DNA of 64,000 nucleotides from contig NC_134468.1 of assembly GCF_964194025.1 (NCBI RefSeq), forward strand, positions 6,200,001 to 6,264,000, read 5' to 3'. Of this stretch, positions 24,167 through 44,962 are shown one piece after another. The stretch is from Convolutriloba macropyga (taxonomy: Eukaryota). Every line of letters begins with the position of its first letter. Position 1 is the stretch's first letter. A program made the position numbers and the translations under genes. Under the pieces are notes generated by a model. That model did no database searches and had not been told where the DNA came from. It was given only the letters and a program-made list of their open reading frames with translations.

Positions 24167-24353
24167 ATGGAGAAAGAGAATGGCACCGATTCAGACGCTT
24201 ATCGCTCTGTGTTCCCCAACAAACCTTATCCCCCCACACCCAGTACAATTCTGCCAAAACAAGTGGATGCTGGAAAGTTGGAGCAGTTCCAGAAAAAACA
24301 CTCAACTCACATCAAAGACAGCGATGACGAGGATAACGATGGCCCAAAACAAG
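24167..24353 (+). CDS. Channel A exon 1 (cytoplasmic N-terminus)
   Basis: ATG...KKHSTHIKD...KQ G|GTAAAG; homologous to gene B exon 1 (KKQPSHIKD...KQ G|GT). Confidence 0.75.
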
Positions 24354-42300: not shown

Positions 42301-44962
42301 AGGACCAATAGCCACCATTGGGGTAGAATTTTTAAACAAATTAGTTCTCGTTTATATCTCACATCAGTAAGACACCCCAATTTAAGACTTTTAAAAACCC
42401 TTCTAAATGAGGCAAAAAAATTGATCCCCAAGCTGCTTATTTTTGAGATATCTTCACTTGTCTATGGCTCGATAAAAATGTCATCCTGGTATGAAGCTAA
42501 TGGCATCTTTCAGCATACCCAAAAAAATTCTAGTTAAAGTTTGCTACTTTTAAGGCACAAAATAATTTTCTGCTATTATGATCAACTGTCTCCAATTCAA
42601 AAAGTTCGATTTAACTGGTCTTTAAGGACTCAACTAGTCAAAATTGTCACTTTTCGTAGATTTCTTATACAATGCTCCCTGATTTTGTGGCTCCAAAACT
42701 GCGCATTGAAATATTTTCCAAATTTGCGAAAAAACGTTTAATACAGTTCAACCAAACAGCATCTAACTTTTATCTCTTTGCCAGCATCACTAATCGATCG
42801 GATCGCACACTTCAGGACTTCGTTAATTTGATATAGTTATGTGCAACACGTTTGACGAAATTTATGAGTTCACAATTCCCGTGATTCTGCCCTCAGGTGG
42901 CATAAAGTTTTTTTTGCACAGGTTTACGCAAATAGAACGCGAAGGGGGTAAATACGGCAACTGCACTGAGGGCTGGCCTGACTTTTTGCAACTGAACACA
43001 GAATTTACGACAAAGTGGCCGAAATACGACAGAGAGACTTGTCTCTTCTACTGTCTGCAGAATGCGATGGCAGAGAGCTGTGGATGCACAGACAGTTACG
43101 AATTCAACTTCAGCACTAATTCAGTCATCAACAGGGCATCCCAGTTCTACTGTGACGTCACTAACAGAACAGAAAGCGAATGCAGACAAAGTAAGATAGC
43201 AAATAATACTATATTCCCCTCTCAACCACCGTGCATCTCAAAAAAGAGCTTGACCAATCTTCGCAGCAATAATGTTACCGCGTCAAAGTTTCAAACGCAG
43301 AAAAAGTTGCCATAAACACCAAAAAAGTATTCAGGCTCACAAAATGAAATTTAGGGAATAATAAATAGGAAGGAACAGCTGAGAACAGGCTACTGCTAAG
43401 GCGCTGCAGACTAAATAAATTATGCAGAAACAAATTTTTAGTATCAGAAAATAAAGGTTAACAGATCGAGTTCTGATACAACCGAGATCAAACTTAACAT
43501 CCCCATATCAGAAAGATTTTCGGAAAGCTTTTGGACTGAAGCGATTTTGAGAAAAATCAAATCAATGTAGTTTATCTGAAATCAGCCATGCCGTGTTGTT
43601 TAAAGAATTGAACTTAACAGATTTAAAAAATAATAGCATCTTATCCTTTTGACCCAAGCATGGTGTGTGAACATAATTTGCACCTCTAAACGCACAATGC
43701 CATTTTTACGTAACTATTCACTATGCTATAGCACGTGCTCTGTGAGATAATTTTGAAAATAAAAAAAAAATGAGAACTTTTCTTTGTCAAAACTTCATAA
43801 AGTCAAAGAAGAAATTACCTGTTAAATTCTTAAGTTGCGGTGAGAAGAAAAAGCAACAAAATTAAACTTGATTCAGACTATTATTTCGTCTGGGCGCTAT
43901 CAATATTGAACTATTAATCGAATGTCAAGGTAAACTCTCGTACCTATAGAAACCTGATTTAAACATCCACTGACCTCAAACTGCTTAACTCGATTGCATG
44001 AAAAGAAACATAATTAGAAATACATTTCACACGCCCAAAACAGAAAATGTTCTTATAAAATTCAAATTTTTTCTGTATATTTTTGCATAGATAAGTACGC
44101 GCTGAATTTTGCATATTTTCAGGAAACAATTTTAAATAAAATTTCAGTTCATTCAATTCTTTTTACCCGTGCTCGAGGCCACAACAGTGCAACTGGGGTG
44201 CATATCGTACTGTTGGGGGCAAGCCGAAAAGGTTCTATTCATCAATATTATAAACAATATAGGCAAAAAAAAAAGAAAATAGAAAATTTGGATCTTTTTC
44301 GTTTCGTGTTTTTAAGCCCCCGATTACAATCTATGAGCGGTTGTATAACACGTTACTCGCTAGAAAAAAGCACTTAAGCCTGGCCATGTAAAAGTTAAAT
44401 GCACACTAAGCTGTGGGGTGACAGCATAGATCCGAAAACTTTGACTAAGAAAATTTACTCAAAGATCCAATTACTTTACACACAGTGAGAAGTGAGAGTA
44501 ACACTGTTTTCCTGTTTAGATATTTACAACAAATTCAAGGACAGCACTCTTGACTGTGGAAGGTGTCCTCAAGGTTGCAAAACAACCCACTTCAGTCAGC
44601 GACAGTCGACATCTCCTTGGCCATCTGAGGCGTTCGCTGCATTTTTTGCTACAAACATGCTCAAATCCAAATCAGAGCGAGTCCTCAATTACATGTCAGA
44701 TATCATGAACAACGAAAACTTGACAGAAGCTACACTAAAGGACAGTTTCCGCAAAAACTTTGCTCGCGTTGAAGTCTTCTATGAATCCTTGAATTTTGAA
44801 AAGATGTCTGAAAGTCCAGCATATGAACTGGTTGACCTCATAAGCGACTTTGGAGGTAATATTGGACTTTGGCTAGGCTGGAGTGTACTGGCTGTTTTCC
44901 AAATTGTCCAATTTTTGTACGAAGTTGGGGAGATACTCATTTGTAAACGGAACAAAAAATGA
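24167..44962 (+). CDS. DEG/ENaC channel subunit A with LDLa-LDLa-like-CUB insertion in the finger domain (~910 aa, 10 exons)
   Basis: Exons 24167-24353, 25417-25564, 30122-30386, 33957-34083, 34355-34503, 35542-35680, 37389-37594, 39444-40243, 42922-43190, 44520-44962. Intron phases chain 1,2,0,1,0,1,0,2,1 into one frame of 2733 nt. Motifs: TM1, FPAVTVCNENP, CTFDGKKC, YGNCFTFN, GLKLTL, Cys-rich thumb, TM2 LISDFGGNIGLWLGWS. Confidence 0.9.
25417..25564 (+). CDS. Channel A exon 2 (pre-TM1 and TM1)
   Basis: ctctAG|...HRILQIIWILAYIGLTALFLYQF AG|GT; closely matches 52801-52954. Confidence 0.88.
30122..30386 (+). CDS. Channel A exon 3 (post-TM1 FPAVTVCN motif, start of LDLa1)
   Basis: tttcAG|..KNYLKYDVDISIEIQTAQSLKFPAVTVCNENPLRR...[14 protein letters not shown]|GT. 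Confidence 0.92.
30953..33594 (-). mobile_element. ~2.6-kb family E element, copy 2 (intron 3 of channel A); a related right end lies at ~985-1170
   Basis: Hairpin GTGC-gatg-GCAC + GTTCCGACCC ... GGGTCGGAAC; shared terminal TTGAGTATATAGTTCC block. Confidence 0.75.
33957..34083 (+). CDS. Channel A exon 4 (LDL-receptor class A repeat, C-terminal half)
   Basis: tttcAG|[27 protein letters not shown]...EEQ G|GT. Confidence 0.9.
34355..34503 (+). CDS. Channel A exon 5 (second, degenerate LDLa-like repeat)
   Basis: tttAG|GICNWPYIQCPDEELCAVKCDNRSECTETKGYDESLKAGCTDNSCIFILE|GT; paralogous exon at 59469-59617. Confidence 0.85.
34899..35401 (-). mobile_element. Helentron/DINE-like family B (~500 bp); other copies ~9838-10346, ~62415-62894, partial ~9170-9700; related termini at ~40716 and ~60500-61016
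   Basis: Hairpin CTGGCA-gat-TGCCAG + AATAGCCGC ... GCGGCTATT; shares an internal core (GAGGTAAGTCA..., AAATGACGTCAC) with family A. Confidence 0.7.
35542..35680 (+). CDS. Channel A exon 6 (CUB domain N-half)
   Basis: tttcAG|ANLTEQYITSDNYPNNYDSNTDCLWWIDATESDDKIDITFEDLFAE G|GAGAG (non-canonical donor). Confidence 0.85.
36200..36288. repeat. (GT)n/GTGCGC compound microsatellite running into an assembly gap (N 36289-36635)
   Basis: Directly visible. Confidence 0.95.
37389..37594 (+). CDS. Channel A exon 7 (CUB domain C-half)
   Basis: cAG|GSPGDCFDYVELYDGPTVNASAIKIDGRQKACGYSSPKKKTYSSTGSSLLVRFVSDQLNNFRGFRISYQ. Donor is either GC at 37595 or a weak GT at 37605. Confidence 0.85.
37627..39035 (-). 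mobile_element. Helentron/DINE-like non-autonomous element family A: two head-to-tail 523-bp copies plus a degenerate third
   Basis: Units start at 37627 and 38150. One end has hairpin CCGGCA-gat-TGCCGG followed by ATAGCTGCGAA; the other end has its inverted repeat TTCGCAGCTAT. No TSD visible, A/T-run junctions. Confidence 0.75.
39444..40243 (+). CDS. Channel A exon 8 (furin-flanked basic tract, acidic tract, finger/beta-ball/palm)
   Basis: TAG|ASSNAEGRKKR...RYTR...DSDSDEYDSEEYEYEYEG...FIVQCTFDGKKC...YYGNCFTFN...GLKLTL...TFISI AG|GT. Confidence 0.9.
42922..43190 (+). CDS. Channel A exon 9 (Cys-rich thumb)
   Basis: cacAG|..KYGNC...YDRETCLFYCLQNAMAESCGC...ECRQ A|GTAAG. Confidence 0.92.
44520..44962 (+). 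CDS. Channel A exon 10 (end of thumb, knuckle, TM2, short C-tail, stop)
   Basis: tttAG|..CGRCPQGC...SPWPS...NFARVEVFYESLNFEKMSESPAYELVDLISDFGGNIGLWLGWSVLAVFQIVQFLYEV..TGA. Confidence 0.93.

Follow-up and report, generated by a model that had tools for sequence, protein, structure and literature searches.

The window analysed here, a 64,000-nucleotide stretch of the Convolutriloba macropyga genome (contig NC_134468.1, positions 6,200,001 to 6,264,000 of the forward strand), carries on its + strand, at window positions 24167-44962, one expressed gene of ten exons for a 922-amino-acid DEG/ENaC ion channel subunit with a cassette of extracellular modules, LDLa-LDLa'-CUB, inside its finger domain. 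This gene, hereafter copy 1, is followed by a tandem paralog. We hold the architecture, and its production from a single transcript, to be very probable. The known gating stimuli of DEG/ENaC channels, namely protons, peptides, force and proteolysis, act on a compact ectodomain, and to our knowledge modules of the CUB/LDLa type have been described solely as auxiliary proteins in their own right, serving other channel families.

Splice signals border ten stop-free blocks on the + strand over 24167-44962, and joining these blocks yields a coding sequence of 2769 nucleotides (922 codons) with no internal stop, in which introns 1 to 9 have the phases 1, 2, 0, 1, 0, 1, 0, 2 and 1. Exon 1 (24167-24389) provides the start codon and the cytoplasmic N-terminus (amino acids 1-74) and ends at a GTGAGT donor in phase 1; a second possible donor at 24353 would leave the phase unchanged. 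Exon 2 (25417-25564) encodes the segment RLQDATMPETA, without the usual His-Gly, and the first transmembrane segment, TM1 (amino acids 103-123). In exon 3 (30122-30386; donor GTATGC, phase 0) the motif FPAVTVCN and finger helix alpha1 are followed by the first two cysteines of an LDLa module, LDLa1 (DCAEGFDAC), so that the join of channel to cassette at the 5' side can be read directly in the DNA. The remainder of LDLa1 lies in exon 4 (33957-34083), entered in phase 0 and left in phase 1, and exon 5 (34355-34503) encodes a degenerate LDLa-like module together with the first cysteine of the CUB domain. The N-terminal half of the CUB domain is encoded by exon 6 (35542-35680), which ends in phase 1 at a GA donor (GAAG/GAGAGA, the slash marking the exon boundary), and the C-terminal half by exon 7 (37389-37594), which ends in phase 0 at a GC donor. 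Intron 6 (35681-37388) is thus a GA-AG intron and intron 7 a GC-AG intron (CAG/GCTAGC ... cactag/GCATCC). Exon 8 (39444-40243) contains a furin-type site, a basic and an acidic, tyrosine-rich tract, the finger helices and the CTFDGKKC strand (39930-39953); exon 9 (42922-43190) encodes the palm and the cysteine-rich thumb, and exon 10 (44520-44962) the second transmembrane segment, TM2, with GLWLGWS (44864-44884), and the stop codon.

The channel portion of the protein matches the Pfam ASC profile (PF00858) in successive pieces: profile positions 43-116 in exon 3 (E 8e-11), 128-260 in exon 8, 263-341 in exon 9 and 335-455 in exon 10. Two transmembrane segments, TM1 and TM2 (amino acids 890-916, with the G-x-S motif in GLWLGWS), flank a cysteine-rich ectodomain, and full-length homologs match the same profile at 1e-66 to 1e-76. 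Between the first two ASC pieces the exon 4 translation matches the LDLa profile at 15-37 (E 5.5e-07), exon 6 the CUB profile at 9-46 (1.7e-08) and exon 7 the CUB profile at 56-110 (8e-07). LDLa1, assembled from exons 3 and 4, shows the spacing C-x6-C-x5-C-x6-C-x5-C-x9-C and the D-x-S-D-E acidic cluster expected of PF00057, while the CUB domain (PF00431) has four cysteines and the acidic residues of a putative calcium site (E in FAEG, D in FDYVE and D in VSDQ). Exon 5 gave no Pfam match, including to PF00057, for which it was considered as a second LDLa. Its pattern is C-x6-C-x5-C-x3-C-x5-C-x14-C with YDES, and in the family alignment the relative P0009 has a near-canonical CNGIRECSDGSDE at this position; the cysteine pattern and this relative identify exon 5 as a shortened, degenerate LDLa. 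When the PDB was searched with phmmer, the cassette CUB proved closest to the CUB domains of cubilin and PCPE-1, and the NETO2 CUB was a weak match. The cassette lies between finger helix alpha1 and the alpha2/alpha3 helices, which, judged from sequence, is the topological place of the GRIP domain of vertebrate ENaC.

The first-pass annotation of this DNA had proposed an LDLa-LDLa'-CUB cassette within the finger of a complete DEG/ENaC subunit, in one polypeptide, and this proposal is borne out by exon 3, by the RNA contig and by homologs with uninterrupted open reading frames (both described below). Its expectation that PF00858 would be split by PF00057 and PF00431 agrees with the single-exon Pfam matches, which are complementary and in order, and the phases are consistent as it had stated, though one donor is GA and one GC. 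The end of exon 7 (37594, at the GC donor), the start of exon 8 (39444) and the GA-AG borders of intron 6 had to be corrected, and the spliced product has 922 rather than 910 amino acids. Its reading underrates three features set out below: the place of the insert at the ENaC GRIP position in a core most like ENaC gamma/beta, the RxKR site that nearly all family members examined have after the CUB domain, and the spread of the architecture through a family.

Four sequencing runs (X1-X4) were placed on positions 34300-40299. Runs X1-X3 have a depth of about 50 that is even across introns and exons, and they are therefore DNA, whereas the depth of X4 is confined to exons, which identifies it as RNA. 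An X4 contig of 1152 nucleotides (record 25) matches 34353-34501, 35540-35678, 37387-37592 and 39442-39973 with 0 mismatches, that is, exons 5, 6, 7 and 8 joined in order and in frame. The pieces are shifted 2 nucleotides to the left because the exons end in AG, the same as the acceptor, and the true joints are 34503/35542, 35680/37389 and 37594/39444. A second X4 contig (record 29) extends across the exon 8 donor. Both non-canonical introns are accordingly removed in RNA. Intron 6 contains an assembly gap (N, 36289-36635), which lies between the two CUB exons and adjoins a (TG)n-like microsatellite. Since record 25 spans exons 5-8, the sequences flanking the gap follow each other in RNA in the right order and reading frame, and since the CUB junction EG/SPGDC has the same length in intronless homologs in the family alignment, the gap hides no coding sequence.

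Introns 6 and 7 are also distinguished by pairing between their ends. With the first and last 40 nucleotides of each intron, intron 6 (35681-37388) gave a folding energy (dG) of -22.8 with z -4.3 (0/300 shuffles) and intron 7 (37595-39443) a dG of -17.5 with z -2.4 (7/300 shuffles); the seven GT-AG introns gave z values from -0.7 to +0.3, so that only these two of the nine introns pair. Such pairing might hold weak splice sites close to one another, or it might point to an origin of the intron from a transposon. Separately, introns 5 and 7 contain very high-copy repeats (34900-35500 and 37500-39100) with many repeat-to-repeat joints; there the contig word depths add up to 1e5-1e6, where single-copy DNA has about 50.

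With exon 8 as query, an exhaustive HMMER search identified 849 relatives, many of them of 800-1600 amino acids, while word-index protein searches gave few matches and no spliced protein of Convolutriloba macropyga. From the 150 relatives listed, 30 picked by length were inspected, and Pfam was run on 20. In the latter set the order ASC-LDLa-CUB-ASC was found in P0003, P0004, P0007, P0009, P0014, P0026, P0031 and P0022, and other members carried 6-9 LDLa modules, Kringle with PAN and LDLa, three CUB domains with LDLa, TSP1 with CUB and LDLa, or discoidin with PAN. In all 20 the ASC match restarts at profile positions 128-139, and the motif FPAVTxC, where present, precedes the extra modules. 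The named relatives come from the acoel Symsagittifera roscoffensis, from the hemichordates Saccoglossus, Ptychodera and Glandiceps, and from the echinoderms Anneissia, Patiria, Strongylocentrotus, Lytechinus, Amphiura and Diadema, and are annotated as uncharacterised or by a generic name. None of the 20 named relatives inspected, a small sample picked by length, is from chordates, protostomes or cnidarians. A clade limited to Xenacoelomorpha and Ambulacraria is possible on these sequences, the distribution being a lead and not a result.

Several homologs are single uninterrupted genomic open reading frames: P0151 (901 amino acids), P0007 (857 amino acids) and P0026 (880 amino acids; XP_063721483.1), each with the order ASC-LDLa-CUB-ASC. 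The spliced copy 1 protein is collinear with all three from TM1 to TM2, without gaps at the exon joints, and because these homologs are uninterrupted the architecture does not depend on the splicing of a gene model. P0001 is a 99 % identical open reading frame in another assembly. Intronless homologs were located in Symsagittifera roscoffensis (L003/L004, 1001-3643) and on ENA contigs (L001, 3001-5706; L002, 3001-5574), and set against the nine introns of copy 1 they imply either that those homologs were retroposed or lost their introns, or that the Convolutriloba macropyga gene gained them. On the L004 contig a MOLO1-domain gene lies immediately upstream of the homolog. By sequence comparison, then, the copy 1 architecture is not unique: it belongs to an acoel family, and related mosaic inserts occur in Ambulacraria.

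The tandem paralog (49083-61617, + strand) is represented in the window by exons 1-6 and continues past the window end. It keeps the cassette, with amino acid identities to copy 1 of 82, 76, 67 and 60 % in exons 3, 4, 5 and 6, and has a GC donor where exon 6 of copy 1 has GA. Between the copies the nonsynonymous divergence (dN) is 0.11-0.23 and the synonymous divergence (dS) is saturated, at least 1.2, which makes dN/dS ratios unreliable and limits the claim to dN being far below dS. Because dN is low relative to a saturated dS, the cassette has been under long-term purifying selection in both copies.

Elsewhere in the window, a single-exon open reading frame of 772 amino acids on the - strand (3476-5794) has the C-terminus CKDCEEYY ... 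SRHRVHYTPPKTPKHFWSLDFP, a sequence that presumably resembles the conserved end-resection motif of CtIP/Sae2.

The linker that follows the CUB domain of copy 1 in exon 8 has the furin-type site RKKR (39465-39476, + strand; amino acids 427-430) and a basic tract that extends to 39605; besides RKKR, copy 1 has the dibasic pair KR and the stretch KKGKLK, and an acidic tract (39633-39749) with 14 tyrosines and 28 Asp/Glu residues comes after them. The pattern R-x-[KR]-R occurs after the CUB domain in 12 of 13 family members, mostly 5-11 residues from the CUB end, and in five members the motif recurs 40-50 residues downstream. The acidic, tyrosine-rich tract comes next. As the surrounding linker is otherwise unconserved, the basic site is under selection. 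Whether a furin-type convertase would process the protein at RxKR is a prediction for which we see the chances as evenly balanced.

When P0007 was compared with the PDB by phmmer, the best matches were human ENaC gamma (1e-37) and ENaC beta (1e-31), followed by FaNaC1 (4e-31), human ENaC alpha (2e-30) and ASIC1 (about 5e-23). Residues 63-135 of P0007 align with 52-119 of ENaC gamma and residues 501-846 with 241-554; because the gamma matches stop at 119 and resume at 241, the insert replaces the finger-helix/GRIP segment. In an AlphaFold2 monomer model of P0007 the mean predicted local distance difference test score (pLDDT) is 68, with 85-93 for the channel core and 70-89 for the CUB domain; both LDLa modules and alpha1 are of low confidence, the post-CUB linker is disordered (pLDDT <50), and terminal helices span 61-91 and 816-856. 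A fold search matched the core of the model to the FaNaC, ASIC and ENaC folds. No GRIP-like beta-sheet was present in this model between the linker and alpha2. The GRIP domain has been described as distinctive of ENaC and as the seat of its proteolytic activation (PMC13488063).

Compared with ENaC, the proteins described here share a finger insert between alpha1 and alpha2 and, in that insert, one or more polybasic motifs of the furin type, but in ENaC the insert is the GRIP domain, a small beta-sheet element containing an inhibitory tract, whereas here it consists of LDLa-LDLa'-CUB and a disordered basic/acidic linker; copy 1 further differs in having no His-Gly, and its cleavage is a prediction. 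Close counterparts are the Symsagittifera roscoffensis proteins P0026 and P0161 (XP_063722317.1), which have the same ASC-LDLa-CUB-ASC order, a degenerate second LDLa and a basic site after the CUB domain (RxKR in P0026, only KR in P0161), but are 31-40 % identical to copy 1 and, in the case of P0026, intronless where copy 1 has nine introns. The mosaic DEG/ENaC proteins of Ambulacraria (Saccoglossus, Ptychodera, Glandiceps, Anneissia) likewise place their modules after FPAVTxC and before ASC position 128, but the module sets are different and they show no evident conservation of a furin site after the CUB domain. By analogy, NETO1/2, SOL-2 and LEV-10 also set CUB and LDLa modules beside an ion channel ectodomain; these are separate single-pass auxiliary proteins that act in trans on glutamate or acetylcholine receptors, whereas here the modules are in cis, in the same open reading frame as a DEG/ENaC channel, and so do not constitute an auxiliary subunit. 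The nearest precedent is that of C. elegans EGAS-1 to EGAS-4, in which a DEG/ENaC channel is fused to extracellular protein-interaction modules, these being EGF modules rather than LDLa or CUB (PMC10424705).

Full-text literature searches, together with targeted look-ups in a DEG/ENaC review and a study of xenacoelomorph and hemichordate ASICs, turned up no LDLa or CUB domain in a DEG/ENaC protein. The proteins themselves are present in RefSeq as uncharacterised predictions, so the observation concerns a family and copy 1 is not a unique gene. The remark in the first-pass annotation that it knew of no characterised channel with this architecture agrees with the literature searched; the architecture recurs across a family in RefSeq. 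Its statement that the paralog conserves the cassette is confirmed by exons 3-6 at 49083-61617. The RNA path that it anticipated across exons 3-8 was recovered from exon 5 to exon 8, and the joint of exons 3 and 4 was not seen; the separate nested transcript that it named as a possible refutation is rejected, exon 3 being shared and the RNA contig continuous.

Taken as a whole, these observations are best explained by an expressed subunit with its cassette in the GRIP slot, a convertase cut and a cis-tethered binding module, an account that we consider likely. The subunit would be made as one chain and would assemble as a trimer. In the secretory pathway a proprotein convertase would cut it at the conserved RxKR just past the CUB domain (RKKR, amino acids 427-430 of copy 1), leaving two associated chains: one with TM1, alpha1 and LDLa-LDLa'-CUB, and the other with the basic tract, the acidic and probably sulfated tyrosine-rich tract, and then finger, palm, thumb and TM2. 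LDLa1 and the CUB domain retain most of the acidic residues of their calcium cages, and in other proteins such acidic cages of LDLa and CUB domains grip lysine or arginine residues of a partner. The cassette would thus be a binder tethered in cis, whose partner might come from outside the channel, as an extracellular protein or a component of the matrix, or might be the basic tract of the channel itself, and its occupancy would alter finger-thumb coupling and hence open probability. Control of gating by a ligand or tether through the cassette is the part of this account that we advance only tentatively, and think doubtful; the role that the first-pass annotation proposed for the cassette, a NETO-like or tethered ligand-binding module that gates the channel, is conjectural too.

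A number of observations weigh against this account. In LDLa1, Asn stands at two calcium-ligand positions of the cage; copy 1 has a single canonical RxKR site; the P0007 model gives the cassette no confident placement on the channel; the likeness of the channel core to ENaC gamma/beta, the closest among solved structures, is a matter of E-values and not of a tree; and the function of the cassette is something that we infer. The conduction pathway raises further doubts. Ahead of TM1, where T-x-H-G was looked for, copy 1 has T-M-P-E; its PETA (25455-25487) stands against PQTG in the family, relatives having PQ, PH or PN, and His-Gly is missing across the whole clade while GxS (GWS) in TM2 is kept. 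The motif is typical of DEG/ENaC channels and not defining. After the selectivity filter, a Gln of copy 1 replaces the Glu of its relatives (FQIVQF versus FEILQF; 44861-44941), so that copy 1 may differ from its relatives in conduction, and it may conduct poorly, need partner subunits or form no channel. These features would suit a protein that uses the DEG/ENaC scaffold as a receptor or for adhesion, or else a subunit whose obligate role in heteromers is silent or modulatory, the latter fitting the tandem paralogs and the many family members in the genome; moreover, the EGAS proteins ('EGF plus ASC domain') gave no current in oocytes (PMC10424705). Against a non-conducting protein stand the conservation of TM1, TM2, GxS (GWS), the thumb cysteines and the palm and the match to the ASC profile nearly from end to end, and we regard it as somewhat unlikely. 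Less likely again would be a cassette that binds collagen or other matrix for mechanical gating, with the furin cut incidental. MEC-1, MEC-5 and MEC-9, which act in trans for MEC-4, offer a model for such a tether in cis, the cassette CUB is most like those of cubilin and PCPE-1 (binders of collagen or other ligands), the finger is a peripheral, exposed part of the ectodomain, and relatives have the matrix-type modules TSP1, Kringle, PAN and discoidin at the same site; yet a cut after the CUB domain would sever the direct chain from the tether to the alpha2-thumb side.

The cassette might also be optional, the main product joining exon 3 to exon 8 as an ordinary channel and the cassette form being a minor one or one limited to certain tissues. 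Phase 0 is shared by the donor of exon 3 and the acceptor of exon 8, so that a cassette-free isoform would keep the frame, and the donors of introns 6 and 7 are weak and non-canonical. In the RNA placed on 34300-40299, the joint of exons 3 and 4 was not seen, and a run search with exon 3 returned only runs from the same study of genomic-like size, with X4 not among them. The first 125 nucleotides of record 25 lie upstream of that stretch and equal the length of exon 4 minus the 2-nucleotide shift; the contig thus seems, from this length rather than from a reading of the bases, to break at the 5' boundary of exon 4, a sign that several upstream contexts may exist, such as spliced and unspliced molecules. 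However, a joint of exon 3 to exon 8 was likewise not seen in the RNA of this stretch, the sole path observed containing exons 5-8; skipping would strand two LDLa cysteines in exon 3 and is impossible in the homologs that carry the cassette in uninterrupted reading frames, and both paralogs maintain the cassette under purifying selection. We therefore think an optional cassette improbable. Hardly credible at all is an artefact, with a nested gene as the true owner of the LDLa/CUB exons, or decay, with copy 1 as a pseudogene. The GA donor of exon 6, with an in-frame TGA 36 nucleotides downstream (stop at 35716), might suggest it, but the splice in the RNA contig falls precisely on the GA donor and the contig runs on into exon 8, exon 3 is common to ASC and LDLa1, the full coding sequence is open and dN is far below dS. 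A pseudogene or read-through at the GA donor is ruled out by the spliced RNA contig, and a nested LDLa/CUB gene by the shared exon 3, the RNA contig and the intronless homologs.

The preferred account, an expressed subunit with a processed, cis-tethered cassette in the GRIP slot, differs from a description of one gene in that the modules and the conserved convertase site occur at the ENaC GRIP position across a whole family. Extended to that family, it would hold that in a clade of ENaC-like proteins of acoels and Ambulacraria the GRIP slot is a general docking site for shuffled modules, and that the LDLa-CUB subtype is processed by furin and then gated by a tethered, calcium-dependent module as this takes up an extracellular protein or lets go of the basic tract of the channel itself, a conjecture that we put forward with more doubt than conviction. 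If true, it would mean a receptor-channel chimera with protease and ligand gating, and it could supply a molecular character for the Xenambulacraria question; the restriction to acoels, hemichordates and echinoderms among the relatives inspected may likewise carry phylogenetic information. The family opens to test the origin of the ENaC finger insert, the existence of proteolytic regulation before vertebrates, and the gating of DEG/ENaC channels by extracellular proteins.

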